Source: Tubulanus polymorphus (taxonomy: Eukaryota; Animalia; Nemertea). From it: 64,000 nucleotides of DNA. This document shows, piece after piece, positions 6,443 to 40,000 of the stretch. The stretch is taken from contig NC_134030.1 of the NCBI RefSeq assembly GCF_964204645.1, positions 21,598,210 to 21,662,209 on the forward strand, in the 5' to 3' direction. The number at the start of each line of letters is the position of its first letter. The stretch's first letter is position 1. Both the position numbers and the translations under genes were made by a program. The notes below the pieces were generated by a model that was not told the DNA's origin, searched no databases, and saw only the letters and a list, made by a program, of their open reading frames with translations.

Positions 6443-6901
6443 ATGCCTGGTGGAATCAGCGTTAAAGATGTCAACCAGTCCGAGTTCGTCAAAGCTCTGG
6501 CCGCGTTCCTGAAAAAATCCGGCAAAATGAAGGTGCCCGACTGGGTCGACCTCGTCAAGACTGGAATCCACAAAGAACTGGCGCCGTACGACGACGACTG
6601 GTGGTTCATCCGATCGGCTTCGATCGCGCGCCATCTTTACATCCGTGCCCCGGTCGGCGTCGGCGCGTTCTGTCGCATTTACGGCGGTCGCAAGAACAAC
6701 GGCGTCGCGCCGTCTCACTTCTGTCGCAGCACGCCGTCGATCTCGCGTAAGATTCTGCAGTCGTTGGAGGCGCTGAAACTCGTCGAGAAGGACACGGCGT
6801 CCGGCGGGCGTCGTCTGACCAATCAGGGCCGTCGCGATCTGGACCGCATCGCCGCGCAGATTAAACTGAGGAATAAACGACGCGCCGAAAAACGAAAGTA
6901 G
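6443..6901 (+). CDS. RPS19: 40S ribosomal protein S19 (eS19), 152 aa, single coding exon
   Basis: [41 protein letters not shown]...[17 protein letters not shown]...[16 protein letters not shown] is the eS19 signature; AATAAA at 6999-7004. Confidence 0.98.
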
Positions 6902-9435: not shown

Positions 9436-11035
9436 GTGTTTTCGCGTGCGCCATTGTCAACGCTCTTCCGATATTCTGCATCACGAGCAGCGTTTACTGC
9501 ATGATCGCCATCGCCTACGAACGCTACTGCGCCACGGTGCGCGCGCTGGACGCCTCCAAACGACTGACCACGTGCCAAGCTCGCGCGACGATCGCCGTCA
9601 TATGGGTCGGAGCCGTCCTGATTTCGTCGCCGACCGTTTACGAATACCACGTCTACGACAAGTGGATCGATAACGCTTCGCACGCCACGTGCGGTAACGA
9701 AGGCCGGTCGCGCCTGTTCGTCATCGGTCACGCCTTTTTCATCCTATTCTCGACCTATATCATTCCGCTGGTAGTGATCGTATGGCTGTACGTTAATGTA
9801 ATCAGGTTCTTCTGCCGGAAGGGTAGCGAGGTTGAACCGGTATCGTCTGGCGGTTCAGTAGTCGCCGCGCAGCCGCAGACGTCGGTCGTATCGAAAAATA
9901 AAATCCGTCTGGTGAAAATGTTCATCATTGTTGCGGCGCTGTTCGCCGTCTCCTGGTTACCGTATTTCGTAACGTTCATGATAATGGTAATGATTCTAAC
10001 ACCGTCATTTTTGAAATTCGAATTTTTAGCCAACCGGGCGCGTTAGCCACTTTGATTGGTTAAAACTAATATTCAAATCAGCCGTATTTGAATATTTGGG
10101 CGGATCCGCAGGGGAATCGTTAGACTTATATGTCCATCATACTTCAATTATGCTTTTTTTCCATTTTTGTCAACAGACAAGAATTTCTATTAAAAGAACA
10201 GTCATTTTTGAACGAAACTAATACATTTTGACAGACACAAAAAAAGAATAAATTTGAAAACATTGTCTTAACGTATCTATCCTTGTACGTCAGCTGTATG
10301 ACTGAAAAACATACAACTAACAGTATTCATTATTTATGGTTGGAATTGATAAATCTTGAAAGAGATTTCGTAAATTTCAATACGATGTTAGAACTGATCT
10401 TCAAAAATAAAAGCTGAATAAAACAGAATAAATTTGTTTCTAAAAAAATTCCAAATCATTTTCTTAACGAAAAACTAGGAATAATTGATAGGACACATGG
10501 CGACCACGTTTGGCCAGTTGCTTGCTTATTCACTAAAAGATTGCCTTTTGAACGACAACGCCCCCTCCCCTTAGTAAAGTTCATCAGAATTAGCTTCTGG
10601 ATCCACCGCTTCAAGTTACCAATTATCTCTTTTTACGGTTATTACGCAAATAAGAATCGTTTGAATTAATTATTAGGATAAATATTATAGCATTTCTAAT
10701 TTCAGAAACTGAACGGTAAGGACGAAACGGCTGAATCGAACGGTTACTTGAACATGCTCAAAATATCACTGACGGTTTTCAGTACGAGTTATAACGCGGT
10801 TCTGTACGGGGTTTACTGCCCCCAGTATCGACAAGGATACCGACGGATACTGTGCTACCTCTGCCGTCATCCGCCAGGAGCAGTGTCATCGAAAGTTTCC
10901 AATCACGTCGTCAACAAACGGTCGACTATCGACTCTCAGGGTGCTGGTTTATCCAGCGTTATCGCAGGGAACCTTAACGGTGGTCACCCGCATGCGCAGG
11001 AACTTTTATACGCGGGAAATGAATCATTTATGTAG
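9436..11035 (+). CDS. Class A (rhodopsin-like) GPCR, neuropeptide-receptor-like; exons 9436-9986 (TM3-TM6) and 10706-11035 (TM7, C-tail); 5' exon(s) not located
   Basis: TM3 Cys and SVYCMIAIAYERY; TM4 IWVGAVLISSP; TM5 YIIPLVVIVWLY; TM6 LFAVSWLPY; TM7 STSYNAVLY then helix 8 and Cys; phase-0 intron 9987-10705 (GT..AG) keeps frame; AATAAA at 11545-11550. Confidence 0.88.
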
Positions 11036-13051: not shown

Positions 13052-16000
13052 ATGGTGTATTGGTGTTGTCGGCCTGGGCCGCATTGGTTACCGTTTTTAG
13101 TGGCTGTCGGTACGCCGTTAACTTTCGTAATCACGTAAGTTTTATACGGGTCAACATTCACGAAACTGGGTCACGATTTGTGCAACTTTCATGAAACGTG
13201 ATTTTCGCAAATAGCAAGAATTGGTGAAATCAAATATCCATTCAAATTTCGTGAAATTTCATACTTAGCCCTTTCATTGCTGACTGTTTTAGACTGAAGT
13301 GCGGGAAGTTTTTTTGGAAAACTCCATCCCAGTGCAGTGTATTACAGGCATACTGCTGTATTGTGTCTGTCCTGCAGTGCGGTGTATTACAGGCATACTG
13401 CTGTATTGTGTCTGTCCTGCAGTGCAGTGTATTACTGGCACACTGCTGTATTGTGTCTGTCCTGCAGTGCGGTGTATAACATGCATACCTACCCGTAGTG
13501 CAGTGTATCATTGGTTGACAATGTTTGACAATAGTAGCTGCCATCTTCCGATATGCATTTCAAATGATAGATAATTTTGTAGACACTTCGCACTGCAAGG
13601 TGGGCAAAACACGGGTCGATTATACACCGCATAGCGGGGTATGCCGATGAAAGGATTAGATTCAGTTCTAAGCTGAAGATTTTCTTATTATATTCAGTTA
13701 CGTGATTTCTGTATTAAATGGCCACGTAGAGGCGGGATTTCCGTACATAAGGTACGTCAATCAATAACAGCAAAAATTCGAATTTTTGATAACAGAAATT
13801 TTTGCCAAATTCATTCAGACGTATTTAGTGAATTTGTTGATCTGAATTTTTCAGCGACACTGGAACAAATTCTCCGGAAAGTTGTATATTCGGTCAATTA
13901 CTGAACATTAATGCAGTTTTAGGTACGTGAACAATATTTCAAACCCTGAAATGAAGATAGATTTCTAAAGAAAACTGATCATCCACACATTCTTAACATG
14001 TGTTCAGTGCTTCATCTGAGATATTTTTAATTGAAAATGAACTACAAACACCAGATATTAGACATTTTATCAGCACACTTTCAAAAACTGATCGTCCACA
14101 CTTCACATGTGTTCAGTGCTTCACCTGAGACATTTTTAATTGAAAATGAACTACAAACACCTGACATTAGACATTTCAGCACACTTTCAAAAACTGATCG
14201 TCCACACTTCACATGTGTTCAGTGCTTCACCTGAGACATTTTTAATTGAAAATGAACTACAAACACCAGATATTAGACATTTTATCAGCACACTTTCAAA
14301 AACTGATCGTCCACACTTCACATGTGTTCAGTGCTTCACCTGAGACATTTTTAATTGAAAATGAAATACAAACACCAGACATTAGACATTTTATCAGCTC
14401 ACTTTTTCGGCTACAAATGATATTTGATTTCAAATTTGACTTTGTTTCTCACAGTTGGAATTGTGGTGTATATTCGTTACAAACAGATTATCGCTTACTA
14501 TCGAAACGAGGCAATCGTACAGCTTTACATTCTCAAACTGAACAAGGCGTCGTTGATCATCGGAATACTGGCAGGACTCGGACTGAGCGTGGTTGCTAAC
14601 TTCCAGGTACTGTAAACTGGGTCTACGACTGTGGAACTGGATCCACAACTGGTGGAACTGTGTCCACAACTGTGGAAGTGCACGTTTGTGATATATTTGT
14701 ATTATTATTATTTCAGGAGACGAACGTTCTAGCTGTTCACCTGATTGGAGCGTTTACTGGTTTCGCGTGTGGTTGTATTTACGCGTGGATCCACGCGGTC
14801 ATCTCGTATAAAATGCAGGCGTTCGTCACTCATCGCGCCGTCTGTCATCTACGTCTGTTCCTCGCGATAGTCGTCACTTTATTCTTCGTTTTGAGTATCC
14901 TTTGTCGAAATTCGTTACGTGTTTTTCGTTTTCCCCCGTAAAGATTCCGTTAAATAATAAGATAAAAACCGACTATCTACAGATTAAAAGAATTTAAAAA
15001 CAAGAATTTATTTATTCAATCTAAAATATATAGAATACACGACGTTTCGATCTCACCCTAGAGATCATCGTCAGGTGTTACGATGATCTCTATGATGATC
15101 TCTATGACGATGATCACACCTAAAGATGATCTCTAGGGTGAGATCGAAACGTCGTGTATTCTATATATTTTAGATTGAATAAATAAATTCTTGTTTTTAA
15201 ATTCTTCTAATCTGTAAATAGTGGAATTTTATCTGATTATCCGTTCACCACGTTTCAGTGTACAGGTTATCGTTCTACTCCGTTAAACTCTCACAATTTC
15301 GATATATTTCGATATAGCGCGATATTTTAGATGTTCTTTAACCCGAACAGCGTTCACTTTCGATCCGATATCGAAATACTTGTTCCACGGAAAAAACCCG
15401 CGCAAGTGGTACCCTAAGGACGGGGTGAGTCACACTGCATGATATAACACTTCTAGAAATGCTTCAATAATGGTGGGATCTTTCGAGTTTGTTAACATTT
15501 GAATCTGCGGTTCAGTCTCGGGCCTAAGATTTTCAAGGCTGAATTGGTTATACAAAACAATGAATTTAGACTGGGCTTATATTGTTAGATTGGTTATAGC
15601 TCTGGTCTTAAGTTTTAAGATTGGCTATAGAAGCAAAATGAGCTCAGACTGGTCTTAAGTTGTTAGATTGGTAATAAAACCCAAATGAGCTTAGACTGGT
15701 CTTAAGTTGTTAGATTGGTTATAAAACTAAATTAAGCTCAGACTGGTCTTAAGTTGTTACATTGGTTATAAAACTAAATTAAGCTCAGACTGGTCTTAAG
15801 TTGTTATATCAGTTATCATACCAAAATGAGCTTAGACTGGTCTTAAGTTGTCTAAGATAAGCTCAGACTGGTCTTAAGTTGTTATATCAGTTATCATACC
15901 AAAATGAGCTTAGACTGGTCTTAAGTTGTCTAAGATAAGCTCAGACTGACTAACATCTGAATACTAGTCCTAAGAAATAAGACCACTTATGGACTTGAGC

Positions 16001-19000
16001 CACGACTGTGTGACTTGGCTTTAGTCTTAAAGTCCCGTGTATAGGTATCTAATGGTTTCTTACTCTTTCTCTCTCCTCTTTCTTACTCTTTGTTGGTTTG
16101 TGATAATCTTTGCACACCGGTTTTTGTGGTGAATGGTAGATCATCACTCAGGAGCGTACATGAATCAGACTTTAGACTGAGCCCACCTTAACCTCACCGA
16201 GCAATCATCTCATGAGATGATTGCTCGTAGCCTCAACAAAGACCTGTTGATGATTTAAACACATTCAGGCAAACCTGCTTTAACCCTTTCAGTGCGTCTA
16301 CACTGCAGTGCAGTGTATAAATCAGTGATAGATTTGCTTGTACACCGCACTATGGTGTATTGATGTCATTAGTAATTAGTTTTTATCCCTCTTGAAAAAT
16401 GGCAGCAAGTGTCAAACATAGCGAGATATAAGTAACTAATGATACACTGCACCGCGGTGTAGACGCACTATAGCCGTATTCCCGTTATTCAACACACTAG
16501 GGTGGAATTTTTCAAAATGTTCAAATTATCTCCAGCACTATAGGGTAGTAATTAGTCCGCACTGAAAGGGTTAAGACTTAGATCTTGACATACAGTGGAT
16601 TATTCATCAGTTGAATCCAGATTAAATCCAAATTAAATGATTACGATGGCTTGAAAAGATTCTCAGTCGGCTAAGCTTTAAAGTTGACCCTGTACAAGTT
16701 GACCCAGCAGCTTTAGAAATGACCTAATTCCAAATTCTATTGCCATTTACAAAATTAGTTGAAATCATCATTTTCCTAGTCTGGATACGTGTGCGCTCCT
16801 GACGTTGAGTGGAGTGGATGGTTCTGTCTTTGATTCTAACCTCCTATTTTCTTTTCCTTGACTGTAAAACTAAACGCAGCCAGTATATTCGGCATGCTAT
16901 CGATACGTTTCAAGCCAAAAACCGGAACCAAATGGTTTCCTGATAACGCGGTAAGTAAAGCAGTTTGAAGGTCGTTTTCTGAGCGCCTATAAGTCAATTG
17001 GAGAAAAAAAATGTCTCAAATGACTCCGAATCGAGTCTAAACGTCACTACTCTCTTAGTTTTTGAAAATGTCTCAAAGAATTGAGTCTAAACGTCACTAC
17101 TCTCTTAGTTTTTGAAAATGTCTCATATAATTGAGTCTAAACGTCACTACTCTCTTAGTTTTTGAAAATGTCTCAAAGAATTGAGTCTAAACGTCACTAC
17201 TCTCTTAGTTTTTGAAAATGTCTCAAAGAATTGAGTCTAAACGTCACAAATCTCTTAGTTTTCAAAATGTCTCATATAATTGAGTCTAAACGTCACTAAT
17301 CTCTTAGTTTTCAAAATGTCTCTTTGAATTGAGAAAAGAATCAAAACTAAAGGCTACTGCTCCAAACCTGTTGCTCATATCACATGATTTTTTAGTCTCA
17401 CAACACAGGTGCCCACCCTTCCAAATTTGGCTCCATTCCACAGGTCGCCAATCTGTGGCCATAAAAAAGAGTCATGAAATAAACTACAGAATAATGTTTT
17501 ATCATTCAATGAATTTTGTTTATTAATTCACACAAATTACACGATGTGGAATCAGTTTATCCGCTATGGAATCAATAATTTAACCACAGTGGAATCAGAT
17601 ATTCCCGGCCTGTTCATTGGCTTTACGCCACCATTCGTCGTAAGCCGTCTTCTTTCGACGGCTAAGAGCGAGTTCTTCAGCTGAATCATCAGCTGCAGCA
17701 GCAGTTTCAGCGTTCACCATCGACCACAAACTGATCACTAACAACATGATCGGAAGTAAACTTCTCAACATTTTCATCAGCATTGACGCTACAAATTAAT
17801 ACAATCTGTTTTATTATTGTTTAACCTCCGTGAAAGAAAGATCTTCATTCTATTTGTTGAATTAGTTTTTACAAGTTTACAGTGAAATTAGAATTATAAC
17901 TTACCGATCATTTTAACAGTTGTTTCGGCGACAAATCACAGATTTATACGAGCAATTTACGAAGCTGAAATAGGAACGAATACATCGGTGATATTTGAAC
18001 TGAATTTCAGCAGTCATAAAAATATTTAATTCATCTATAATTAATCATAGAACCTACATCTGATGCTAGTTAAACTTAACAGAATTGAATATAGAAAATA
18101 TCTAAAAAATTTTTGACAATTTGAAAATGTTAGAATTATTTCTTGTAAATTTCATTAAACCAACATCTGTTTCAGATAAAGTTAACAAATTCAAAAAAAC
18201 ATCAAATTTCTAAAATTAGAATCAAGTTTTAACAATTTTAAAATGTTGAAATTAGTTCTTGTACAATTCGTCCGTAGCAATAACTACACAATATGAGATC
18301 AATGTTGATGACTCTACGATTGATGAACTTACCTTCGAATACAAACGATTCCAAGTTGATGAAATGTTGATGAAACTGATTGGTTTATATTGACTATGTC
18401 CGCACCACCTGCCTCTCATCTCACACTGGCCGAAATTATCAAAGCAGAAATTTACAATCGATCCTTTTTTTGTCGAATCAGGAATTGAAAAAAATCCACG
18501 CGGGAAACGGAGAATGCGTGCAAAAAATCAACCGAACCATGAATTCAATAATAGATACATCCAAACTGTTACCGGAGCAGTTTTACTGAGTCCTGTTGTG
18601 ATAGAACAAAAGAGATGCGTGCAAAAAACTAAACCAACCGTACATCAAAAACATATGCCACGATTGTTCACTATTTTCATGGGCTTTGATTTGATTAATA
18701 CATGTAATTGATGAATTGATCAGGACTTTTAAAATTTTCGAAAATGTAATGTCGCAGTGAAAAAACACCATCAGCAAACCTAGAATTTCCTACCAAATCA
18801 TACGACAATTTTCACCATTTTCATTCTGGATATAAACAAACTATCGGTTATAACGTATTTCCAGCTGACCCCTGGAGCCGCAGTTGTATCAGGGAGGAGG
18901 GGGGTTAACTAAAATGAAAAACGAATTAACCCCGGGTAAAAGTTCATACCAAAAAATCTCAAGTTTTATAGACTGATATTAACTCAAACACGCGGGTTAA

Positions 19001-22000
19001 CTCAATTGAAAAAGAATTAGGTTAACCCCCGAATAAAACTTAATACCTGTCTATAATGCCAAGCGCTCTCAAGTTTTATAGACTGGTATTAACTTAAACA
19101 CGCGGGTTAACTCAATTGAAAAAGAATTAGGTTAACCCCCGAATTAAACTTAATAACTGTCTATAATGCCGAGCACTGAAGTTAACTATAAGTTCCGCTA
19201 TAAGAACAAGGCGAATCCAAAGCGGTGCGTATCCCCCCTAAAAATGTCGAGTCGCCCTGAAACTAGGGGAAAATGAAAAGTATTAAACTGACACCTGAAA
19301 AAATTTGAATTCATTCCCGCTTATTTCCCACAATCATTTAGTGTTTTCCGATGAGATTTTTCTTTTGGGGATGACCTTACAGATACCCCCTATTTGGGGG
19401 AGGGGTTGCACCCGGCCTCCTTGTATCAGAGCTTAGGTCCGCCCGTTTGTTATAATGTATAATACTGTGCATCGTATAATCGAAGAAATTGACGACAAAA
19501 TGAGATATGCTAACTGTACTGCAGCGGTTTGTTGTACGGGACCGTAAACCATGTACGGGACCGTAAACCACGTCTGGTATTCGATCAGACTAAAACTCTT
19601 TAGAAAATAAAGTTCACTATAAGATAAGCTCACACTGGTCTTTCTTAAGTGGTTAGATTAGTTATAACACTAAAATGAGGTTAGACTGGTCTTAAGTTTT
19701 CAGATCTGGGGCCACTTGCATTGGCTTTCACTTAGACAAATATAAGATCAACTTAGCCAATCTAACATCTGAATACTAGTCCTAAGAAATAAGACCACTT
19801 ATGGACTTGAGCCACGACTGTGTGACTTGGCTTTAGTCTTAAAGTCCCGTGTATAGGTATCTAATGGTTTCTTACTCTTTCTCTTTCCTCTTTCTTACTC
19901 TTTGTTGGTTTGTGATAATCTTTACACACCGGTTTTTGTGGTGAATGGTAGATCATCACTCAGGAGCGTACATGAATCAGACTTTAGACTGAGCCCACCT
20001 TAACCTCACCGAGCAATCATCTCATGAGATGATTGCTCGTAGCCTCAACAAAGACCTGTTGATGATTTTAACACATTCAGGCAAACCTGCTTTAACCCTT
20101 TCAGTGCGTCTACACTGCAGTGCAGTGTATAAATCAGTGATAGATTTGCTTGTACACCGCACTATGGTGTATTGATGTCATTAGTAATTAGTAATTATCC
20201 CTCTTGAAAAATGGCAGCACCTGTCAAACATAGTGAGATATTAGTAACTAACGATACATCGCACCACAGTGTAGACGCACTATAGTGGTATTCCCGTTAT
20301 TCAACACACTAGGGTGGAATTTTTCAAAATGTTAAAATTATCTCCAGCACTATAGGGTAGTAATTAGTCCGCACTGAAAGGGTTAAGACTTAGATCTTGA
20401 CATACAGTGGATTATTCATCAGTTGAATCCAGATTAAATCCAAATTAAATGATTACGATGGCTTGAAAAGATTCTCAGTCGGCTAAGCTTTAAAGTTGAC
20501 CCTGTACAAGTTGACCCAGCAGCTTTAGAAATGACCTAATTCCAAATTCTATTGCCATTTACAAAATTAGTTGAAATCATCATTTTCCTAGTCTGGATAC
20601 GTGTGCGCTCCTGACGTTGAGTGGAGTGGATGGTTCTGTCTTTGATTCTAACCTCCTATTTTCTTTTCCTTGACTGTAAAACTAAACGCAGCCAGTATAT
20701 TCGGCATGCTATCGATACGTTTCAAGCCAAAAACCGGAACCAAATGGTTTCCTGATAACGCGGTAAGTAAAGCAGTTTGAAGGTCGTTTTCTGAGCGCCT
20801 ATAAGTCAATTGGAGAAAAAAAATGTCTCAAATGACTCCGAATCGAGTCTAAACGTCACTACTCTCTTAGTTTTTGAAAATGTCTCAAAGAATTGAGTCT
20901 AAACGTCACTACTCTCTTAGTTTTTGAAAATGTCTCATATAATTGAGTCTAAACGTCACTACTCTCTCAGTTTTTGAAAATGTCTCAAAGAATTGAGTCT
21001 AAACGTCACTACTCTGTTAGTTTTTGAAAATGTCTCATATAATTGAGTCTAAACGTCAATACTCTCTTAGTTTTTGAAAATGTCTCATATAATTGAGTCT
21101 AAACGTCACTACTCTCTTAGTTTTTGAAAATGTCTCATAGAATTGAGTCTAAAAGTCACTACTCTCTTAGTTTTTGAAAATGTCTCAAAGAATTGAGTCT
21201 AAACGTCACTACTCTCTTAGTTTTTGAAAATGTCTCATATAATTGAGTCTAAACGTCAATACTCTCTTAGTTTTTGAAAATGTCTCATATAATTGAGTCT
21301 AAACGTCACTACTCTCTTAGTTTTTGAAAATGTCTCATATAATTGAGTCTAAACGTCACTACTCTCTTAGTTTTTGAAAATGTCTCATAGAATTCAGTCT
21401 AAACGTCACTACTCTCTTAGTTTTTGAAAATGTCTCAAAGAATTGAGTCTAAACGTCACTACTCTCTTAGTTTTTGAAAATGTCTCATATAATTGAGTCT
21501 AAACGTCAATACTCTCTTAGTTTTTGAAAATGTCTCATATAATTGAGTCTAAACGTCACTACTCTCTTAGTTTTTGAAAATGTCTCATAGAATTGAGTCT
21601 AAACGTCACTACTCTCTTAGTTTTTGAAAATGTCTCATAGAATTCAGTCTAAACGTCACTACTCTCTTAGTTTTTGAAAATGTCTCAAAGAATTGAATCT
21701 AAACGTCACTACTCTCTTAGTTTTGAAAATGTCTCATATAATTGAGTCTAAACGTCACTACTCTCTTACTTTTTGAAAATGTCTCAAAGAATTGAGTCTA
21801 AACGTCACTACTCTCTTAGTTTTGAAAATGTCTCATATAATTGAGTCTAAACGTCACTACTCTCTTAGTTTTTGAAAATGTCTCAAAGAATTGAGTCTAA
21901 ACGTCATTACTCTCTTAGTTTTTGAAAATGTCTCAAAGAATTGAGTCTAAACGTCACTACTCTCTTAGTTTTGAAAATGTCTCATATAATTGAGTCTAAA

Positions 22001-25000
22001 CGTCACTACTCTCTTAGTTTTTGAAAATGTCTCATAGAATTGAGTCTAAACGTCACTACTCTCTTAGTTTTTGAAAATGTCTCATAGAATTGAGTCTAAA
22101 CGTCACTAATCTCTTAGTTTTCAAAATGTCTCTTTGAATTGAGAAAAGAATCAAAACTAAAGGCTACTGCTCCAAACCTGTTGCTCATATCACATGATTT
22201 TTTAGTCTCACAACACAGGTGCCCACCCTTCCAAATTTGGCTCCATTCCACAGGTCGCCAATCTGTGGCCATAAAAAAGAGTCATGAAATAAACTACAGA
22301 ATAATGTTTTATCATTCAATGAATTTTGTTTATTAATTCACACAAATTACACGATGTGGAATCAGTTTATCCGCTATGGAATCAATAATTTAACCACAGT
22401 GGAATCAGATATTCCCGGCCTGTTCATTGGCTTTACGCCACCATTCGTCGTAAGCCGTCTTCTTTCGACGGCTAAGAGCGAGTTCTTCAGCTGAATCATC
22501 AGCTGCAGCAGCAGTTTCAGCGTTCACCATCGACCACAAACTGATCACTAACAACATGATCGGAAGTAAACTTCTCAACATTTTCATCAGCATTGACGCT
22601 ACAAATTAATACAATCTGTTTTATTATTGTTTAACCTTCGTGAAAGAAAAATCTTCATTCTATTTGTTGAATTAGTTTTTACAAGTTTACAGTGAAATTA
22701 GAATTATAACTTACCGATCATTTTAACAGTTGTTTCGGCGACAAATCACAGATTTATACGAGCAATTTACGAAGCTGAAATAGGAACGAATACATCGGTG
22801 ATATTTGAACTGAATTTCAGCAGTCATAAAAATATTTAATTCATCTATAATTAATCATAGAACCTACATCTGATGCTAGTTAAACTTAACAGAATTGAAT
22901 ACAGAAAATATCTAAAAATTTTTGACAATTTGAAAATGTTAGAATTATTTCTTGTAAATTTCATTAAACCAACATCTGTTTCAGATAAAGTTAACAAATT
23001 CAAAATAACATCAAATTTCTAAAATTAGAATCAAGTTTTAACAATTTCAAAATGTTGAAATTAGTTCTTGTACAATTCGTCCGTAGCAATAACTACACAA
23101 TATGAGATCAATGTTGATGACTCTACGATTGATGAACTTACCTTCGAATACAAACGATTCCAAGTTGATGAAATGTTGATGAAACTGATTGGTTTATATT
23201 GACTATGTCCGCACCACCTGCCTCTCATCTCACACTGGGTGAAATTATCAAAGCAGAAATTTACAATCGATCCTTTTTTTGTGGAATCAGGAATTGAAAA
23301 AAATCCACGCGGGAAACGGAGAATGCGTGCAAAAAATCAACCGAACCATGAATTCAATAATAGATACATCCAAACTGTTACCGGAGCAGTTTTACTGAGT
23401 CCTGTTGTGATAGAACAAAAGAGATGCGTGCAAAAAACTAAACCAACCGTACATCAAAAACATATGCCACGATTGTTCACTATTTTCATGGGCTTTGATT
23501 TGATTAATACATGTAATTGATGAATTGATCAGGACTTTTAAAATTTTCGAAAATGTAATGTCGCAGTGAAAAAACACCATCAGCAAACCTAGAATTTCCT
23601 ACCAAATCATACGACAATTTTCACCATTTTCATTCTGGATATAAACAAACTATCGGTTATAACGTATTTCCAGCTGACCCCTGGAGCCGCAGTTGTATCA
23701 GGGAGGAGGAGGGGGGGGGGTTAACTAAAATGAAAAACGAATTAACCCCGGGTAAAAGTTCATACCAAAAAATCTCAAGTTTTATAGACTGATATTAACT
23801 CAAACACGCGGGTTAACTCAATTGAAAAAGAATTAGGTTAACCCCCGAATAAAACTTAATATCTGTCTATAATGCCAAGCGCTCTCAAGTTTTATAGACT
23901 GATATTAACTCAAACACGCGGGTTAACTCAATTGAAAAAGAATTAGGTTAACCCCCGAATAAAACTTAATACCTGTCTATAATGCCAAGCGCTCTCAAGT
24001 TTTATAGACTGGTATTAACTTAAACACGCGGGTTAACTCAATTGAAAAAGAATTAGGTTAACCCCCGAATTAAACTTAATAACTGTCTATAATGCCGAGC
24101 ACTGAAGTTAACTATAAGTTCCGCTATAAGAACAAGGCGAATCCAAAGCGGTGCGTATCCCCCCTAAAAATGTCGAGTCGCCCTGAAACTAGGGGAAAAT
24201 GAAAAGTATTAAACTGACACCTGAAAAAATTTGAATTCATTCCCGCTTATTTCCCACAATCATTTAGTGTTTTCCGATGAGATTTTTCTTTTGGGGATGA
24301 CCTTACAGATACCCCCTATTTGGGGGAGGGGTTGCACCCGGCCTCCTTGTATCAGAGCTTAGGTCCGCCCGTTTGTTATAATGTATAATACTGTGCATCG
24401 TATAATCGAAGAAATTGACGACAAAATGAGATATGCTAACTGTACTGCAGCGGTTTGTTGTACGGGACCGTAAACCATGTACGGGACCGTAAACCACGTC
24501 TGGTATTCGATCAGACTAAAACTCTTTAGAAAATAAAGTTCACTATAAGATAAGCTCACACTGGTCTTTCTTAAGTGGTTAGATTAGTTATAACACTAAA
24601 ATGAGGTTAGACTGGTCTTAAGTTTTCAGATCTGGGGCCACTTGCATTGGCTTTCACTTAGACAAATATAAGATCAACTTAGCCAATCTAACATCTGAAT
24701 ACTAGTCCTAAGAAATAAGACCACTTATGGACTTGAGCCACGACTGTGTGACTTGGCTTTAGTCTTAAAGTCCCGTGTATAGGTATCTAATGGTTTCTTA
24801 CTCTTTCTCTTTCCTCTTTCTTACTCTTTGTTGGTTTGTGATAATCTTTACACACCGGTTTTTGTGGTGAATGGTAGATCATCACTCAGGAGCGTACATG
24901 AATCAGACTTTAGACTGAGCCCACCTTAACCTCACCGAGCAATCATCTCATGAGATGATTGCTCGTAGCCTCAACAAAGACCTGTTGATGATTTAAACAC

Positions 25001-28000: not shown

Positions 28001-31000
28001 ATTCGTCCGTAGCAATAACTACACAATATGAGATCAATGTTGATGACTCTACGATTGATGAACTTACCTTCGAATACAAACGATTCCAAGTTGATGAAAT
28101 GTTGATGAAACTGATTGGTTTATATTGACTATGTCCGCACCACCTGCCTCTCATCTCACACTGGGTGAAATTATCAAAGCAGAAATTTACAATCGATCCT
28201 TTTTTTGTCGAATCAGGAATTGAAAAAAATCCACGCGGGAAACGGAGAATGCGTGCAAAAAATCAACCGAACCATGAATTCAATAATAGATACATCCAAA
28301 CTGTTACCGGAGCAGTTTTACTGAGTCCTGTTGTGATAGAACAAAAGAGATGCGTGCAAAAAACTAAACCAACCGTACATCAAAAACATATGCCACGATT
28401 GTTCACTATTTTCATGGGCTTTGATTTGATTAATACATGTAATTGATGAATTGATCAGGACTTTTAAAATTTTCGAAAATGTAATGTCGCAGTGAAAAAA
28501 CACCATCAGCAAACCTAGAATTTCCTACCAAATCATACGACAATTTTCACCATTTTCATTCTGGATATAAACAAACTATCGGTTATAACGTATTTCCAGC
28601 TGACCCCTGGAGCCGCAGTTGTATCAGGGAGGAGGAGGGGGGGGGGGTTAACTAAAATGAAAAACGAATTAACCCCGGGTAAAAGTTCATACCAAAAAAT
28701 CTCAAGTTTTATAGACTGATATTAACTCAAACACGCGGGTTAACTCAATTGAAAAAGAATTAGGTTAACCCCCGAATAAAACTTAATACCTGTCTATAAT
28801 GCCAAGCGCTCTCAAGTTTTATAGACTGGTATTAACTTAAACACGCGGGTTAACTCAATTGAAAAAGAATTAGGTTAACCCCCGAATTAAACTTAATAAC
28901 TGTCTATAATGCCGAGCACTGAAGTTAACTATAAGTTCCGCTATAAGAACAAGGCGAATCCAAAGCGGTGCGTATCCCCCCTAAAAATGTCGAGTCGCCC
29001 TGAAACTAGGGGAAAATGAAAAGTATTAAACTGACACCTGAAAAAATTTGAATTCATTCCCGCTTATTTCCCACAATCATTTAGTGTTTTCCGATGAGAT
29101 TTTTCTTTTGGGGATGACCTTACAGATACCCCCTATTTGGGGGAGGGGTTGCACCCGGCCTCCTTGTATCAGAGCTTAGGTCCGCCCGTTTGTTATAATG
29201 TATAATACTGTGCATCGTATAATCGAAGAAATTGACGACAAAATGAGATATGCTAACTGTACTGCAGCGGTTTGTTGTACGGGACCGTAAACCATGTACG
29301 GGACCGTAAACCACGTCTGGTATTCGATCAGACTAAAACTCTTTAGAAAATAAAGTTCACTATAAGATAAGCTCACACTGGTCTTTCTTAAGTGGTTAGA
29401 TTAGTTATAACACTAAAATGAGGTTAGACTGGTCTTAAGTTTTCAGATCTGGGGCCACTTGCATTGGCTTTCACTTAGACAAATATAAGATCAACTTAGC
29501 CAATCTAACATCTGAATACTAGTCCTAAGAAATAAGACCACTTATGGACTTGAGCCACGACTGTGTGACTTGGCTTTAGTCTTAAAGTCCCGTGTATAGG
29601 TATCTAATGGTTTCTTACTCTTTCTCTTTCCTCTTTCTTACTCTTTGTTGGTTTGTGATAATCTTTACACACCGGTTTTTGTGGTGAATGGTAGATCATC
29701 ACTCAGGAGCGTACATGAATCAGACTTTAGACTGAGCCCACCTTAACCTCACCGAGCAATCATCTCATGAGATGATTGCTCGTAGCCTCAACAAAGACCT
29801 GTTGATGATTTAAACACATTCAGGCAAACCTGCTTTAACCCTTTCAGTGCGTCTACACTGCAGTGCAGTGTATAAATCAGTGATAGATTTGCTTGTACAC
29901 CGCACTATGGTGTATTGATGTCATTAGTAATTAGTAATTATCCCTCTTGAAAAATGGCAGCACCTGTCAAACATAGTGAGATATTAGTAACTAACGATAC
30001 ATCGCACCACAGTGTAGACGCACTATAGTGGTATTCCCGTTATTCAACACACTAGGGTGGAATTTTTCAAAATGTTCAAATTATCTCCAGCACTATAGGG
30101 TAGTAATTAGTCCGCACTGAAAGGGTTAAGACTTAGATCTTGACATACAGTGGATTATTCATCAGTTGAATCCAGATTAAATCCAAATTAAATGATTACG
30201 ATGGCTTGAAAAGATTCTCAGTCGGCTAAGCTTTAAAGTTGACCCTGTACAAGTTGACCCAGCAGCTTTAGAAATGACCTAATTCCAAATTCTATTGCCA
30301 TTTACAAAATTAGTTGAAATCATCATTTTCCTAGTCTGGATACGTGTGCGCTCCTGACGTTGAGTGGAGTGGATGGTTCTGTCTTTGATTCTAACCTCCT
30401 ATTTTCTTTTCCTTGACTGTAAAACTAAACGCAGCCAGTATATTCGGCATGCTATCGATACGTTTCAAGCCAAAAACCGGAACCAAATGGTTTCCTGATA
30501 ACGCGGTAAGTAAAGCAGTTTGAAGGTCGTTTTCTGAGCGCCTATAAGTCAATTGGAGAAAAAAAATGTCTCAAATGACTCCGAATCGAGTCTAAACGTC
30601 ACTACTCTCTTAGTTTTTGAAAATGTCTCAAAGAATTGAGTCTAAACGTCACTACTCTCTTAGTTTTTGAAAATGTCTCATATAATTGAGTCTAAACGTC
30701 ACTACTCTCTCAGTTTTTGAAAATGTCTCAAAGAATTGAGTCTAAACGTCACTACTCTGTTAGTTTTTGAAAATGTCTCATATAATTGAGTCTAAACGTC
30801 AATACTCTCTTAGTTTTTGAAAATGTCTCATATAATTGAGTCTAAACGTCACTACTCTCTTAGTTTTTGAAAATGTCTCATAGAATTGAGTCTAAAAGTC
30901 ACTACTCTCTTAGTTTTTGAAAATGTCTCAAAGAATTGAGTCTAAACGTCACTACTCTCTTAGTTTTTGAAAATGTCTCATATAATTGAGTCTAAACGTC

Positions 31001-34000
31001 AATACTCTCTTAGTTTTTGAAAATGTCTCATATAATTGAGTCTAAACGTCACTACTCTCTTAGTTTTTGAAAATGTCTCATATAATTGAGTCTAAACGTC
31101 ACTACTCTCTTAGTTTTTGAAAATGTCTCATAGAATTCAGTCTAAACGTCACTACTCTCTTAGTTTTTGAAAATGTCTCAAAGAATTGAGTCTAAACGTC
31201 ACTACTCTCTTAGTTTTTGAAAATGTCTCATATAATTGAGTCTAAACGTCAATACTCTCTTAGTTTTTGAAAATGTCTCATATAATTGAGTCTAAACGTC
31301 ACTACTCTCTTAGTTTTTGAAAATGTCTCATAGAATTGAGTCTAAACGTCACTACTCTCTTAGTTTTTGAAAATGTCTCATAGAATTCAGTCTAAACGTC
31401 ACTACTCTCTTAGTTTTTGAAAATGTCTCAAAGAATTGAATCTAAACGTCACTACTCTCTTAGTTTTGAAAATGTCTCATATAATTGAGTCTAAACGTCA
31501 CTACTCTCTTAGTTTTTGAAAATGTCTCAAAGAATTGAGTCTAAACGTCACTACTCTCTTAGTTTTGAAAATGTCTCATATAATTGAGTCTAAACGTCAC
31601 TACTCTCTTAGTTTTTGAAAATGTCTCAAAGAATTGAGTCTAAACGTCATTACTCTCTTAGTTTTTGAAAATGTCTCAAAGAATTGAGTCTAAACGTCAC
31701 TACTCTCTTAGTTTTGAAAATGTCTCATATAATTGAGTCTAAACGTCACTACTCTCTTAGTTTTTGAAAATGTCTCATAGAATTGAGTCTAAACGTCACT
31801 AATCTCTTAGTTTTTGAAAATGTCTCATAGAATTGAGTCTAAACGTCACTAATCTCTTAGTTTTCAAAATGTCTCTTTGAATTGAGAAAAGAATCAAAAC
31901 TAAAGGCTACTGCTCCAAACCTGTTGCTCATATCACATGATTTTTTAGTCTCACAACACAGGTGCCCACCCTTCCAAATTTGGCTCCATTCCACAGGTCG
32001 CCAATCTGTGGCCATAAAAAAGAGTCATGAAATAAACTACAGAATAATGTTTTATCATTCAATGAATTTTGTTTATTAATTCACACAAATTACACGATGT
32101 GGAATCAGTTTATCCGCTATGGAATCAATAATTTAACCACAGTGGAATCAGATATTCCCGGCCTGTTCATTGGCTTTACGCCACCATTCGTCGTAAGCCG
32201 TCTTCTTTCGACGGCTAAGAACGAGTTCTTCAGCTGAATCATCAGCTGCAGCAGCAGTTTCAGCGTTCACCATCGACCACAAACTGATCACTAACAACAT
32301 GATCGGAAGTAAACTTCTCAACATTTTCATCAGCATTGACGCTACAAATTAATACAATCTGTTTTATTATTGTTTAACCTTCGTGAAAGAAAGATCTTCA
32401 TTCTATTTGTTGAATTAGTTTTTACAAGTTTACAGTGAAATTAGAATTATAACTTACCGATCATTTTAACAGTTGTTTCGGCGACAAATCACAGATTTAT
32501 ACGAGCAATTTACGAAGCTGAAATAGGAACGAATACATCGGTGATATTTGAACTGAATTTCAGCAGTCATAAAAATATTTAATTCATCTATAATTAATCA
32601 TAGAACCTACATCTGATGCTAGTTAAACTTAACAGAATTGAATACAGAAAATATCTAAAAATTTTTGACAATTTGAAAATGTTAGAATTATTTCTTGTAA
32701 ATTTCATTAAACCAACATCTGTTTCAGATAAAGTTAACAAATTCAAAATAACATCAAATTTCTAAAATTAGAATCAAGTTTTAACAATTTCAAAATGTTG
32801 AAATTAGTTCTTGTACAATTCGTCCGTAGCAATATCTACACAATATGAGATCAATGTTGATGACTCTACGATTGATGAACTTACCTTCGAATACAAACGA
32901 TTCAAAGTTGATGAAATGTTGATGAAACTGATTGGTTTATATTGACTATGTCCGCACCACCTGCCTCTCATCTCACACTGGGTGAAATTATCAAAGCAGA
33001 AATTTACAATCGATCCTTTTTTTGTGGAATCAGGAATTGAAAAAAATCCACGCGGGAAACGGAGAATGCGTGCAAAAAATCAACCGAACCATGAATTCAA
33101 TAATAGATACATCCAAACTGTTACCGGAGCAGTTTTACTGAGTCCTGTTGTGATAGAACAAAAGAGATGCGTGCAAAAAACTAAACCAACCGTACATCAA
33201 AAACATATGCCACGATTGTTCACTATTTTCATGGGCTTTGATTTGATTAATACATGTAATTGATGAATTGATCAGGACTTTTAAAATTTTCGAAAATGTA
33301 ATGTCGCAGTGAAAAAACACCATCAGCAAACCTAGAATTTCCTACCAAATCATACGACAATTTTAACCATTTTCATTCTGGATATAAACAAACTATCGGT
33401 TATAACGTATTTCCATCTGACCCCTGGAGCCGCAGTTGTATCAGGGAGGAGGAGGGGGGGGGTTAACTAAAATGAAAAACGAATTAACCCCGGGTTAAAG
33501 TTAATACCAAAAAATCTCAAGTTTTATAGACTGGTATTAACTCAAACACGCGGGTTAACTCAATTGAAAAAGAATTAGGTTAACCCCCGAATAAAACTTA
33601 ATACCTGTCTATAATGCCAAGCGCTCTCAAGTTTTATAGGCTGGTATTAACTTAAACACGCGGGTTAACTCAATTGAAAAAGAATTAGGTTAACCCCCGA
33701 ATTAAACTTAATAACTGTCTATAATGCCGAGCACTGAAGTTAACTATAAGTTCCGCTATAAGAACAAGGCGAATCCAAAGCGGTGCGTATCCCCCCTAAA
33801 AATGTCGAGTCGCCCTGAAACTAGGGGAAAATAAAAAGTATTAAACTGACACCTGAAAAAATTTGAATTCATTCCCGCTTATTTCCCACAATAATTTAGT
33901 ATTTTCCGATGAGATTTTTCTTTTGGGGATGACCTTACAGATACCCCCTATTTGGGGGGAGGGGTTGCACCCGGCCTCCTTGTATCAGAGCTTAGGTCCG

Positions 34001-37000
34001 CCCGTTTGTTATAATGTATAATACTGTGCATCGTATAATCGAAGAAATTGACGACAAAATGAGATATGCTAACTGTACTGCAGCGGTTTGTTGTACGGGA
34101 CCGTAAACCACGTCTGGTATTCGATCAGACTAAAACTCTTTAGAAAATAAAGTTCACTATAAGATAAGCTCACACTGGTCTTTCTTAAGTGGTTAGATTA
34201 GTTATAACACTAAAATGAGGTTAGACTGGTCTTAAGTTTTCAGATCTGGGGCCACTTGCATTGGCTTTCACTTAGACAAATATAAGATCAACTTAGCCAA
34301 TCTAACATCTGAATACTAGTCCTAAGAAATAAGACCACTTATGGACTTGAGCCACGACTGTGTGACTTGGCTTTGGTCTTAAAGTCCCGTGTATAGGTAT
34401 CTAATGGTTTCTTACTCTTTCTCTCTCCTCTTTCTTACTCTTTGTTGGTTTGTGATAATCTTTACACACCGGTTTTTGTGGTGAATGGTAGATCATCACT
34501 CAGGAGCGTACATGAATCAGACTTTAGACTGAGCCCACCTTAACCTCACCGAGCAATCATCTCATGAGATGATTGCTCGTAGCCTCAACAAAGACCTGTT
34601 GATGATTTAAACACATTCAGGCAAACCTGCTTTAACCCTTTCAGTGCGTCTACACTGCAGTGCAGTGTATAAATCAGTGATAGATTTGCTTGTACACCGC
34701 ACTATGGTGTATTGATGCCATTAGTAATTAGTAATTATCCCTCTTGAAAAATGGCAGCACCTGTCAAACATAGTGAGATATTAGTAACTAACGATACATC
34801 GCACCACAGTGTAGACGCACTATAGTGGTATTCCCGTTATTCAACACACTAGGGTGGAATTTTTCAAAATGTTCAAATTATCTCCAGCACTATAGGGTAG
34901 TAATTAGTCCGCACTGAAAGGGTTAAGACTTAGATCTTGACATACAGTGGATTATTCATCAGTTAAATCCAGATTAAATCCAAATTAAATGATTACGATG
35001 GCTTGAAAAGATTCTCAGTCGGCTAAGCTTTAAAGTTGACCCTGTACAAGTTGACCCAGCAGCTTTAGAAATGACCTAATTCCAAATTCTATTGCCATTT
35101 ACAAAATTAGTTGAAATCATCATTTTCCTAGCCTGGATACGTGTGCGCTCCTGACGTTGAGTGGAGTGGATGGTTCTGTCTTTGATTCTAACCTCCTATT
35201 TTCTTTTCCTTGACTGTAAAACTAAACGCAGCCAGTATAATCGGCATGCTATCGATACGTTTCAAGCCAAAAACCGGAACCAAATGGTTTCCTGATAACG
35301 CGGTAAGTAAAGCAGTTTGAAGGTCGTTTTCTGAGCGCCTATAAGTCAATTGGAGAAAAAAAATGTCTCAAATGACTCCGAATCGAGTCTAAACGTCACT
35401 ACTCTCTTAGTTTTTGAAAATGTCTCAAAGAATTGAGTCTAAACGTCACTACTCTCTTAGTTTTTGAAAATGTCTCATATAATTGAGTCTAAACGTCAAT
35501 ACTCTCTTAGTTTTTGAAAATGTCTCATATAATTGAGTCTAAACGTCACTACTCTCTTAGTTTTTGAAAATGTCTCATAGAATTGAGTCTAAAAGTCACT
35601 ACTCTCTTAGTTTTTGAAAATGTCTCAAAGAATTGAGTCTAAACGTCACTACTCTCTTAGTTTTTGAAAATGTCTCATATAATTGAGTCTAAACGTCAAT
35701 ACTCTCTTAGTTTTTGAAAATGTCTCATATAATTGAGTCTAAACGTCACTACTCTCTTAGTTTTTGAAAATGTCTCATAGAATTGAGTCTAAACGTCACT
35801 ACTCTCTTAGTTTTTGAAAATGTCTCATAGAATTCAGTCTAAACGTCACTACTCTCTTAGTTTTTGAAAATGTCTCAAAGAATTGAATCTAAACGTCACT
35901 ACTCTCTTAGTTTTGAAAATGTCTCATATAATTGAGTCTAAACGTCACTACTCTCTTAGTTTTTGAAAATGTCTCAAAGAATTGAGTCTAAACGTCACTA
36001 CTCTCTTAGTTTTGAAAATGTCTCATATAATTGAGTCTAAACGTCACTACTCTCTTAGTTTTTGAAAATGTCTCATAGAATTCAGTCTAAACGTCACTAC
36101 TCTCTAAGTTTTTGAAAATGTCTCAAAGAATTGAATCTAAACGTCACTACTCCCTTAGTTTTGAAAATGTCTCATATAATTGAGTCTAAACGTCACTACT
36201 CTCTTAGTTTTTGAAAATGTCTCAAAGAATTGAGTCTAAACGTCACTACTCTCTTAGTTTTGAAAATGTCTCATATAATTGAGTCCAAACGTCACTACTC
36301 TCTTAGTTTTTGAAAATGTCTCATAGAATTCAGTCTAAACGTCACTACTCTCTTAGTTTTTGAAAATGTCTCAAAGAATTGAGTCTAAACGTCACTACTC
36401 TCTTAGTTTTGAAAATGTCTCATATAATTGAGTCTAAACGTCACTACTCTCTTAGTTTTTGAAAATGTCTCAAAGAATTGAGTCTAAACGTCACTACTCT
36501 CTTAGTTTTGAAAATGTCTCATATAATTGAGTCTAAACGTCACTACTCTCTTAGTTTTTGAAAATGTCTCAAAGAATTGAGTCTAAACGTTACTACTCTC
36601 TTAGTTTTTGAAAATGTCTCATAGAATTGAGTCTAAAAGTCACTACTCTCTTAGTTTTTGAAAATGTCTCATAGAATTGAGTCTAAACGTCACTACTCTC
36701 TTAGTTTTTGAAAATGTCTCAAAGAATTGAGTCTAAACGTCATTACTCTCTTAGTTTTTGAAAATGTCTCAAAGAATTGAGTCTAAACGTCACTACTCTC
36801 TTAGTTTTTTAAAATGTCTCAAAGAATTGAGTCTAAAAGTCACTACTCTCTTAGTTTTTGAAAATGTCTCATAGAACTGAGTCTAAAAGTCACTACTCTC
36901 TTAGTTTTTGAAAATGTCTCATAGAATTGAGTCTAAAAGTCACTACTCTCTTAGTTTTTGAAAATGTCTCATAGAATTGAGTCTAAAAGTCACTACTCTC

Positions 37001-40000
37001 TTAGTTTTTGAAAATGTCTCATAGAATTGAGTCTAAAAGTCACTACTCTCTTAGTTTTTGAAAATGTCTCATAGAATTGAGTCTAAACGTCACTACTCTC
37101 TTAGTTTTTGAAAATGTCTCATATAATTGATTCTAAACGTCACTAATCTCTTAGTTTTCAAAATGTCTCATATAATTGAGTCTAAACGTCACTAATCTCT
37201 TAGTTTTCAAAATGTCTCTTTGAATTGAGAAAAGAATCAAAACTAAAGGCTACTGCTCCAAACCTGTTGCTCATATCACATGATTTTTTAGTCTCACAAC
37301 ACAGGTGCCCACCCTTCCAAATTTGGCTCCATTCCACAGGTCGCCAATCTGTGGCCATAAAAAAGAGTCATGAAATAAACTACAGAATAATGTTTTATCA
37401 TTCAATGAATTTTGTTTATTAATTCACACAAATTACACGATGTGGAATCAGTTTATCCGCTATGGAATCAATAATTTAACCACAGTGGAATCAGATATTC
37501 CCGGCCTGTTCATTGGCTTTACGCCACCATTCGTCGTAAGCCGTCTTCTTTCGACGGCTAAGAGCGAGTTCTTCAGCTGAATCATCAGCTGCAGCAGCAG
37601 TTTCAGCGTTCACCATCGACCACAAACTGATCACTAACAACATGATCGGAAGTAAACTTCTCAACATTTTCATCAGCATTGACGCTACAAATTAATACAA
37701 TCTGTTTTATTATTGTTTAACCTTCGTGAAAGAAAGATCTTCATTCTATTTGTTGAATTAGTTTTTACAAGTTTACAGTGAAATTAGAATTATAACTTAC
37801 CGATCATTTTAACAGTTGTTTCGGCGACAAATCACAGATTTATACGAGCAATTTACGAAGCTGAAATAGGAACGAATACATCGGTGATATTTGAACTGAA
37901 TTTCAGCAGTCATAAAAATATTTAATTCATCTATAATTAATCATAGAACCTACATCTGATGCTAGTTAAACTTAACAGAATTGAATACAGAAAATATCTA
38001 AAAATTTTTGACAATTTGAAAATGTTAGAATTATTTCTTGTAAATTTCATTAAACCAACATCTGTTTCAGATAAAGTTAACAAATTCAAAATAACATCAA
38101 ATTTCTAAAATTAGAATCAAGTTTTAACAATTTCAAAATGTTGAAATTAGTTCTTGTACAATTCGTCCGTAGCAATAACTACACAATATGAGATCAATGT
38201 TGATGACTCTACGATTGATGAACTTACCTTCGAATACAAACGATTCCAAGTTGATGAAATGTTGATGAAACTGATTGGTTTATATTGACTATGTCCGCAC
38301 CACCTGCCTCTCATCTCACACTGGGTGAAATTATCAAAGCAGAAATTTACAATCGATCCTTTTTTTGTCGAATCAGGAATTGAAAAAAATCCACGCGGGA
38401 AACGGAGAATGCGTGCAAAAAATCAACCGAACCATGAATTCAATAATAGATACATCCAAACTGTTACCGGAGCAGTTTTACTGAGTCCTGTTGTGATAGA
38501 ACAAAAGAGATGCGTGCAAAAAACTAAACCAACCGTACATCAAAAACATATGCCACGATTGTTCACTATTTTCATGGGCTTTGATTTGATTAATACATGT
38601 AATTGATGAATTGATCAGGACTTTTAAAATTTTCGAAAATGTAATGTCGCAGTGAAAAAATACCATCAGCAAACCTAGAATTTCCTACCAAATCATACGA
38701 CAATTTTCACCATTTTCATTCTGGATATAAACAAACTATCGGTTATAACGTATTTCCATCTGACCCCTGGAGCCGCAGTTGTATCAGGGAGGAGGAGGGG
38801 GGGGGGGGGGTTAACTAAAATGAAAAACGAATTAACCCCGGGTTAAAGTTAATACCAAAAAATCTCAAGTTTTATAGACTGGTATTAACTCAAACACGCG
38901 GGTTAACTCAATTGAAAAAGAATTAGGTTAACCCCCGAATAAAACTTAATACCTGTCTATAATGCCAAGCGCTCTCAAGTTTTATAGACTGGTATTAACT
39001 TAAACACGCGGGTTAACTCAATTGAAAAAGAATTAGGTTAACCCCCGAATTAAACTTAATAACTGTCTATAATGCCGAGCACTGAAGTTAACTATAAGTT
39101 CCGCTATAAGAACAAGGCGAATCCAAAGCGGTGCGTATCCCCCCTAAAAATGTCGAGTCGCCCTGAAACTAGGGGAAAATGAAAAGTATTAAACTGACAC
39201 CTGAAAAAATTTGAATTCATTCCCGCTTATTTCCCACAATAATTTAGTGTTTTCCGATGAGATTTTTCTTTTGGGGATGACCTTACAGATACCCCCTATT
39301 TGGGGGAGGGGTTGCACCCGGCCTCCTTGTATCAGAGCTTAGGTCCGCCCGTTTGTTATAATGTATAATACTGTGCATCGTATAATCGAAGAAATTGACG
39401 ACAAAATGAGATATGCTAACTGTACTGCAGCGGTTTGTTGTACGGGACCGTAAACCACGTCTGGTAATCGATCAGACTAAAACCCTTTAGAAAATAAAGT
39501 TCACTATATTTTCGTCTAGCTCCACGGTATGATAACGCATAGAAAGGAGTCTAATGTTTTGGGCGGACATAATTCTTGAATTTTCCCATTTCTCATCGAC
39601 ATCACAATTGTTAACAATGTCTAACATCAATTTAACACAACCCGGGGCCGAAGTTGCTCAAAAGTTGGTTAAAGATAACCGGCGGATAAATACCATAGTA
39701 ACAATGAACTTTAAATCGTCACACTATCAACTATCCACTATTTAACTCAAAAGCCCAACGCAGACGGCACCGAAAAAAACATTTTTCCTCGTGCAAAAAC
39801 GTTTTCGATGTTTTTTGTCATGCCGTGTGCGGGGGAGGCAAAACACAAAACGCCGAACTGAAAAACGTTTTTCACGAGCAAAAAACGTTTTCTGAAAAAC
39901 GTGTTTTCTGTTTCGGCGAAACAAAGGTTTTGCCGTCTGCGTTGGGCTTAACCAATTCGAGCATCAAATATTCTAATATTTCTGTCGGTATGTTTCAGGG

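Follow-up and report, generated by a model that had tools for sequence, protein, structure and literature searches.

The last intron of a Frag1/DRAM/Sfk1 family gene in the ribbon worm Tubulanus polymorphus (Nemertea) holds five tandem copies of a small predicted gene on the opposite strand. The DNA analysed, here called the window, is the whole stretch of 64,000 nucleotides (nt) from positions 21,598,210 to 21,662,209 of contig NC_134030.1 (assembly GCF_964204645.1), and positions without a contig name are counted from its first letter. Each of the five units probably carries a working three-exon gene for a secreted prepropeptide of 66 amino acids (aa), one of a lineage-restricted family, that has recently been amplified.

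The array runs from 15932 to 39507 and consists of five complete head-to-tail units of 4.8-5.3 kb each. A preliminary description of this DNA had given the same limits and the same count, and both match in the assembly by Tandem Repeats Finder and self-BLAST, which first outlined the repeat blocks at 15950-39457, and by reading of the edges. Every unit has a unique part of 3.5-3.6 kb and a 50-bp minisatellite, with copy numbers of 6, 26, 26, 26 and 37 across the units.

On its left side the array has its edge within a 47-bp minisatellite (about 15853-15932), and on its right side it stops at 39507 (...gttcactata). Each internal junction between units holds a relic of the 47-bp minisatellite (24547-24632 is one of them), and the unit starts from such a relic. 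In total, the array takes up 23,508 of the 24,574 bases of the host intron (15425-39998), or 96%. The repeats concerned are:

15602-15948, no strand: 47/78-bp minisatellite at the left array edge (Tandem Repeats Finder, edge reading).
17028-17333, 20840-22143, 25766-27069, 30583-31886 and 35380-37229, no strand: 50-bp minisatellite between units (Tandem Repeats Finder).
25018-25312, no strand: dispersed repeat of about 295 bp, of which there is one per unit (self-BLAST, genome scan).

The 295-bp repeat is a high-copy one: a first look across the genome gives thousands of candidates that are 85-100% identical, and the window has a further copy at 52641-52943. It is a putative young element resembling a short interspersed nuclear element (SINE) or a miniature inverted-repeat transposable element (MITE), and would have been in the unit before amplification.

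Substitution divergence between full units is 0.09-0.80%, and 1.4-1.8% for the edge piece. This points to a very recent amplification of a predicted secreted-peptide gene inside the intron of a DRAM-family gene, as had been proposed.

The host was assigned to the Frag1/DRAM/Sfk1 family (Pfam PF10277) through the stretch 14600-14938, which reaches 40.6 bits where the cut-off is 30.3. Two further exons fall short of it (27.2 and 18.9 bits), and the match was confirmed by a scan of the worm's own genome. The exons are colinear with the profile, matching positions 62-114, 107-181 and 190-218 of 220 in genomic order:

14421-14938, plus strand: two host exons (profile positions 62-114 and 107-181), in stop-free stretches 14421-14612 and 14600-14938 (Pfam PF10277).
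15331-15424, plus strand: penultimate host exon (...RKWYPKDG), with donor GTGAGT at 15425 (splice-site reading).
39999-40193, plus strand: last host exon (profile positions 190-218), with acceptor AG at 39997-39998 and stop codon at 40191-40193.

The reading frame had been described as jumping in phase from 15424 to 39999, and this stands: both junctions (15424/GTGAGT and AG/39999) are phase 0. Given this donor and this acceptor, the array lies in the last host intron, on the opposite strand. Two other Frag1/DRAM-family genes of the same genome have all their matched exons inside some 1.6-1.8 kb, which means that the last intron of this one, at 24.6 kb, is unusually swollen.

On the minus strand, all five units keep a TATA box, two introns bounded by GT and AG, an open frame and an AATAAA signal. 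In copy 1, the TATA box tcaatataaacc is at 18393-18382. Exon 1 is short (about 30-50 nt) and ends at 18333, after which come intron 1 (367/368 nt, 18332-17965 in copy 1), exon 2 (60 nt, 17964-17905), intron 2 (116 nt, 17904-17789) and exon 3, which starts at 17788 and carries an open reading frame (ORF) of 62 aa. The AATAAA lies 73 nt past the stop codon, at 17524-17519. The five copies are:

17519-18393, minus strand: gene copy 1, with TATA box 18393-18382, exon 1 end 18333, exon 2 17964-17905 (ATG at 17911), exon 3 from 17788, stop codon end 17595.
22329-23202, minus strand: gene copy 2, with exon 1 end 23142, exon 2 22774-22715, exon 3 from 22598, stop codon end 22405.
27255-28128, minus strand: gene copy 3, with exon 1 end 28068, exon 2 27700-27641, exon 3 from 27524, stop codon end 27331.
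32072-32945, minus strand: gene copy 4, with exon 2 32517-32458, exon 3 from 32341, stop codon end 32148; this copy carries A39V.
37415-38288, minus strand: gene copy 5, with exon 2 37860-37801, exon 3 from 37684, stop codon end 37491.

The TATA box, the two introns with their junctions, the AATAAA and the 62-aa ORF in all five units had been described before, and are all present. Four of the ORFs are identical and the one in unit 4 has the A39V change (in the numbering of the 62-aa ORF). The full product is longer, however. The first ATG of the predicted mRNA is in exon 2 (17911-17909), and there is no other ATG in exons 1 and 2. Exon 2 ends in ...aaaATGATCG, before gtaagt, and exon 3 starts with CGTCAATG..., in frame. 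Because the exon-2 ATG reads in frame across the splice, the predicted product has 66 residues, MIAS followed by the 62. Exon 1 and most of exon 2 form the 5' leader. Intron 2, which had been placed in the 5' untranslated region (UTR), is on this start a phase-1 intron within codon 3, so it interrupts the coding sequence.

Each unit would encode a precursor made of a signal peptide, an acidic spacer, the sequence RRKK and a C-terminal peptide of 17 residues. The predicted signal peptide has an n-region with K and R and a 12-residue hydrophobic core, where the 9-residue hydropathy peaks at 3.2 (LLPIMLLVI). It is likely to be cleaved at ...VNA/E, with V-N-A at positions -3 to -1. The spacer has 16 residues and a net charge of -5, and leads to the tetrabasic RRKK, a putative convertase site. 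In the proposed scheme the product would be secreted and cut there.

The 17-mer is Trp-rich, weakly acidic (net charge -1) and Cys-free, and its helical hydrophobic moment is within the top 2% of shuffles. AlphaFold, given a shallow family alignment, predicts a helical conformation for the whole chain, with a predicted local distance difference test (pLDDT) score of 77-83 over the 17-mer. The array gene ends in ...AGNI, directly before the stop codon; a C-terminal Gly that could act as amide donor is not present.

A six-frame search of the worm's own 268-Mb assembly finds 19 loci and one fragment, and the array gene is a divergent member of this family of about 20 predicted genes. Seven loci on the same contig (C6) are near-identical and of the array type, namely the five in the array and two dispersed ones (copies A and B), with one amino-acid change among the 7. 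The remaining loci are more diverged:

C6:22524673-22524858 (plus strand) and C6:22665931-22666116 (minus strand): the two dispersed array-type copies, with identical protein, about 0.9 and 1.05 Mb away.
C6, 1.77-1.85 Mb: three diverged paralogues.
C6, 10.90-10.91 Mb: six diverged paralogues in 16 kb.
C10: two diverged paralogues.
C4: one diverged paralogue, the last of 12.

What the array, copy A and copy B have in common is a gene module of 1.28 kb alone, at 96.7-97.9% identity, both introns included. Because copies A and B keep both introns, this is duplication at the DNA level and not retroposition. Copy A adjoins a 60-bp minisatellite. There is also a 109-bp tandem repeat on both sides of the array (14000-14405 and 50391-50863) and near copy B, at 92-96% identity.

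The course of events may be pictured as follows. The 1.28-kb module would have been copied by DNA-level duplication to three places on the contig. One of these copies, antisense in the last intron of the DRAM-family gene, would then have been amplified to five together with some 3.5 kb of neighbouring sequence, with unequal exchange at the flanking minisatellites as the likely cause. There may have been a dosage benefit to this. A transposon carrying the gene was considered as well and is ruled out, given that the sequence around the gene in each unit occurs only in the array, except for the 295-bp repeat.

Most paralogues end differently from the array gene: RR is followed by a cationic peptide rich in Tyr and Lys, and then by Gly. 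In four paralogue types this Gly is the last residue before the stop codon, and these peptides are presumably amidated. Their precursors end as follows:

Tyr-rich paralogue, P form: RR, then GYSPGYKKYRSKYP, then G.
Tyr-rich paralogue, E form: RR, then GYSEGYKKYRNRDYS, then G.
Paralogue L014: RR, then GYSESYKKYRGIPTSYP, then G.
Paralogue L017: RRR, then IRFDYHVAKPPKYNFGPRRT, then G.

The spacer and the cleavage site read ...DDSTEEEIARDLA followed by RR in the Tyr-rich paralogues and L017, and paralogue L019 has KK only. A frameshift was tried as the origin of the divergent C-terminus of the array gene and was ruled out, since that gene aligns in frame with L017 (YDEWWRKA and FDYHVAKP respectively). 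One paralogue, L018 (C6:10898249-10901404, ORF at 1501-1677), has two compensating 1-nt indels in the signal-peptide region (...LLRSCCMWICLW...), and is probably a pseudogene or a damaged copy.

The evidence for a working gene comes from comparing the array gene with four diverged paralogues. Exon 1 is 84-98% identical, exon 2 is 82-93% identical, and the signal-peptide part of exon 3 reaches 93-95% nucleotide identity, whereas both introns and the upstream and downstream flanks are at the level of shuffled sequence. The mature region is 70-71% identical, against about 62% for shuffled sequence. Intron lengths in the paralogues vary, from 221 to 493 nt and from 116 to 221 nt.

The signals for transcription and splicing are also kept. 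The TATA box is found in about 12 of the diverged paralogues as well. At the end of exon 2, ATGAT(C/G)G followed by GT(A/G)AGT is present in 18/18 family members besides L019, for which no exon 2 was found, and the acceptor AG followed by CGTCA is present in 19/19. The first ATG of the 62-residue ORF is replaced by ACG in two paralogues, L017 and L019. Since L017 nevertheless keeps the exon-2 ATG, the upstream start is supported.

Exons and splice sites are thus kept across diverged paralogues whose introns no longer align, which argues for a genuine spliced gene. Judged from these alignments, the array gene is very probably real, and a chance ORF within a satellite is very unlikely. The same pattern is visible at closer range. 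The array, copy A and copy B have 0 substitutions between them across the 391 exon bases, while in intron and post-poly(A) sequence, roughly 560 bases, there are 14-20 (Fisher p = 2e-5 to 6e-4).

Purifying selection shows in the Tyr-rich subgroup, where the ratio of nonsynonymous to synonymous differences per site (pN/pS) comes to 0.14 in the spacer and to 0.38 in the peptide. Signal-peptide DNA is near-unchanged even at synonymous sites (pS 0-0.07), while the introns are saturated. This freezing of the signal exon could reflect constraint at the nucleotide level or gene conversion. Across the family, promoter, leader exons and signal sequence are near-frozen as DNA, and the putative released peptide changes fast.

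Conservation extends upstream of the gene. Every unit has two copies of a 15-nt motif, TTTTYGCACGCATYC, which is absent from the rest of the window:

18512-18627, minus strand: upstream motif pair TTTTTGCACGCATTC / ...CATCT, some 120 and 220 nt upstream of the TATA box; the unit-1 motifs are at 18512-18526 and 18613-18627, the other four units have them at the same offsets, and most paralogues have the pair beside them too.

Genome-wide, TTTTYGCACGCATYC has 29 exact matches, around 18 of which are beside family members, and the reversed control has 0. Some paralogues carry it as the two arms of an inverted repeat that spans about 160 bp. The motif could be a shared enhancer or the relic of a MITE.

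The promoter and exon 1 (206 nt together) also match three loci that the protein search had missed: C8:332490 at 93%, C8:117292 at 95% and C56:49140 at 95%. The coding paralogues of the array gene are below these three loci, at 73-88%. The first locus, L029 (C8:332000-335000), has the same TATA box, the same exon 1, a homologous intron 1 and an exon 2 without ATG, and then continues with two different exons:

L029:1195-1266: exon 3, coding.
L029:1348-1467: exon 4, coding.

The predicted L029 product has a different signal peptide, followed by IQIEKR and a 34-residue peptide with 8 Cys (GTPCKCRGK...CCPN). This peptide resembles Defensin_4 / BDS-type sea-anemone toxins (PF07936) at a sub-threshold level: with 19.4 bits it falls just short of the cut-off of 20.6 (E = 0.001), over profile positions 1-19 of 34. 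The database search found no homologue of the 8-Cys peptide. In the sister copies at C8:117 kb and C56:49 kb the ATG has become TTG and a donor site is lost, so that these look dead. The predicted promoter/leader module is thus joined to unrelated coding exons.

The array product itself has no relative in an exact-protein look-up and a word-indexed homology search (5.8 billion clustered proteins). A profile search of 1.84 billion proteins gave 3 weak matches, all to long proteins, the best of which has an hhalign probability of 2%. The ESM Atlas likewise holds no relatives, the best scores (0.83-0.84) belonging to bacterial hypotheticals. Pfam gives only chance-level matches for the ORF, and Rfam finds nothing in the window. 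In the supplements of two surveys of nemertean toxins, neither LWSMVNA nor a 14-residue family motif occurs (PMC9415933, PMC10674772).

Several points weigh against a working secreted-peptide gene. Public protein collections contain no matching protein, even though they include transcriptome assemblies. The signal peptide and its cleavage were called from hydropathy and simple rules. Gene conversion, and not selection, could account for a signal exon that is frozen at the nucleotide level. For the leader-sharing gene, the match behind the toxin-like label lies below the Pfam cut-off. Finally, the amplified member lacks the C-terminal Gly and the cationic, Tyr-rich character of its family, and may be an offshoot that is decaying or has no function.

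If the gene does work, its product may be an abundant exocrine peptide, for defence, as toxin or in mucus, rather than a nerve signal; on the present evidence the chance of this is a little short of even. The exocrine role is favoured because the genes multiply as whole copies. The main, if circumstantial, reason to favour a gland-type role is that an unrelated Cys-rich, toxin-like gene starts with the same promoter and leader.

A more ambitious proposal is tentative, and rather doubtful as a whole. Here, a palaeonemertean would possess a modular 'secretory leader', made up of the motif-bearing promoter and two leader exons, which would have been joined both to the Cys-free family of amidated peptides and to the 8-Cys toxin-like peptide. 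On this view the array would be the latest expansion, driven by dose, and the member concerned would have neofunctionalised, going from cationic and amidated to acidic and Trp-rich.

Alternatively, the family may consist of neuropeptide or hormone precursors, and the array may raise the supply of a signalling peptide. The layout of signal, spacer, dibasic site and short peptide, to which four paralogue types add a C-terminal Gly, is what such precursors would have. As no more than a lead, precursors of PDH, NPF/NPY and diuretic hormone are among the low-scoring neighbours in the ESM Atlas (0.76-0.77). This is still unlikely. The supply of a neuropeptide is usually raised by repeats within one precursor, and not by many near-identical genes. 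In addition, the amplified member has no amidation signal, and the promoter and leader are common to the Cys-rich toxin-like gene. Family motifs also identify no member in the nemertean proneuropeptide catalogue: LRSLLPIM and DEWWRK are not in its supplements (27 files, with 64 Tubulanus polymorphus entries), and the one match for YKKYR is an unrelated Lineus protein (PMC8557429).

It might also be that the copy number is an artefact of assembly, and that the true haplotype has fewer or more than five units. Long 50-bp satellites are hard to assemble, and units 2 and 3 are only 3 substitutions apart in 3.5 kb. An artefact should be considered improbable, however. Satellite lengths differ between units, as does the number of a 110-bp repeat (2/3/2/2/2), and private variants are common to neighbouring units, in the graded set of unit-specific and neighbour-shared variants that a resolved array has. 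These three features speak against a pasted or trivial duplicate.

A last reading is a macrosatellite that was amplified neutrally around a silent or dying gene copy, its ORF having no product: although the unit is mostly non-coding (minisatellites, the 295-bp dispersed repeat, the 110-bp repeat) and the amplified member has lost the terminal Gly, the frame, TATA box, splice sites and poly(A) signal are intact in 5/5 copies, a single amino acid differs among 7, and exon changes are absent from all 391 bases where the non-exon bases of the three loci have 14-20, which makes this very improbable.

Three other features were noted in the window, in addition to the array and its host:

6440-6898, plus strand: complete ribosomal protein S19e in one uninterrupted frame (Pfam E = 1.5e-56), an intronless gene or a retrocopy.
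9402-10043, plus strand: exon of a rhodopsin-type G-protein-coupled receptor (7tm_1, E = 1e-26), upstream of the DRAM-family gene.
54836-59352, minus strand: long frames (114, 377 and 230 aa) with hydrophobic segments, which may be exons of a membrane transporter.

Small secreted-peptide genes, with around 200 coding bases, are routinely missed by annotation when they are in the intron of another gene. Here the sequence by itself is enough to recognise such a gene as real, and through it a family of about 20, without described relatives, comes into view. Peptide toxins and mucus components of ribbon worms are poorly known, and the family is a testable candidate for new bioactive peptides. It also offers a case for studying how copy number and the sharing of leader exons build secretory repertoires, even if the mechanism is not of a new kind. 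If it is true that all genes sharing the leader are expressed in one gland type, they would make up a new nemertean effector superfamily, defined by a shared 5' cassette and not by protein sequence.

While the family itself is new, it is of a known kind, in which a nested gene for a secreted peptide is amplified in tandem, its signal being conserved and its peptide variable. Frog precursors of the preprodermaseptin type have a conserved 5' UTR and signal, an acidic spacer, Lys-Arg, a variable peptide and Gly as amide donor (PMC6151546, PMC4885059). Frog and nemertean precursors alike are small (59-70 aa), with strongly conserved signal, acidic spacer, basic site and one variable C-terminal peptide, often with an amidation Gly, and in both conservation extends into the 5' UTR. 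Word-indexed and profile searches find no sequence similarity in the signal and spacer regions, however. Because no sequence is shared, the family is an analogue of the preprodermaseptins and not a member. It also differs in that the nemertean leader is two separate exons, with an intron splitting the coding start, that the amplified peptide is acidic and non-amidated, and that another gene has the leader as well but not the signal peptide.

The Nv1 cluster of Nematostella vectensis consists of near-identical tandem toxin genes and a few escaped, more diverged copies, and copy number is thought to set the dose (PMC9842752). The array resembles it in having near-identical tandem copies of a small secreted-peptide gene as well as dispersed ones. 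Expression and activity are proven for Nv1, a Cys-rich toxin of sodium channels, whereas the array peptide is Cys-free and known here from its sequence. There are also five copies only, within the intron of another gene.

As in superfamilies of the conotoxin type, signal DNA is frozen (93-95%, synonymous sites included) and the mature region has strongly diverged. Unlike in those, there is no cysteine framework, and the mature peptide of the Tyr-rich subgroup is under purifying and not diversifying selection (pN/pS 0.38). More generally, nested genes and gene-carrying macrosatellites also have a complete opposite-strand gene in a host intron, repeated within a tandem unit at the kilobase scale. 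What sets this case apart from that general class is the host, whose last intron has swollen to 24.6 kb.

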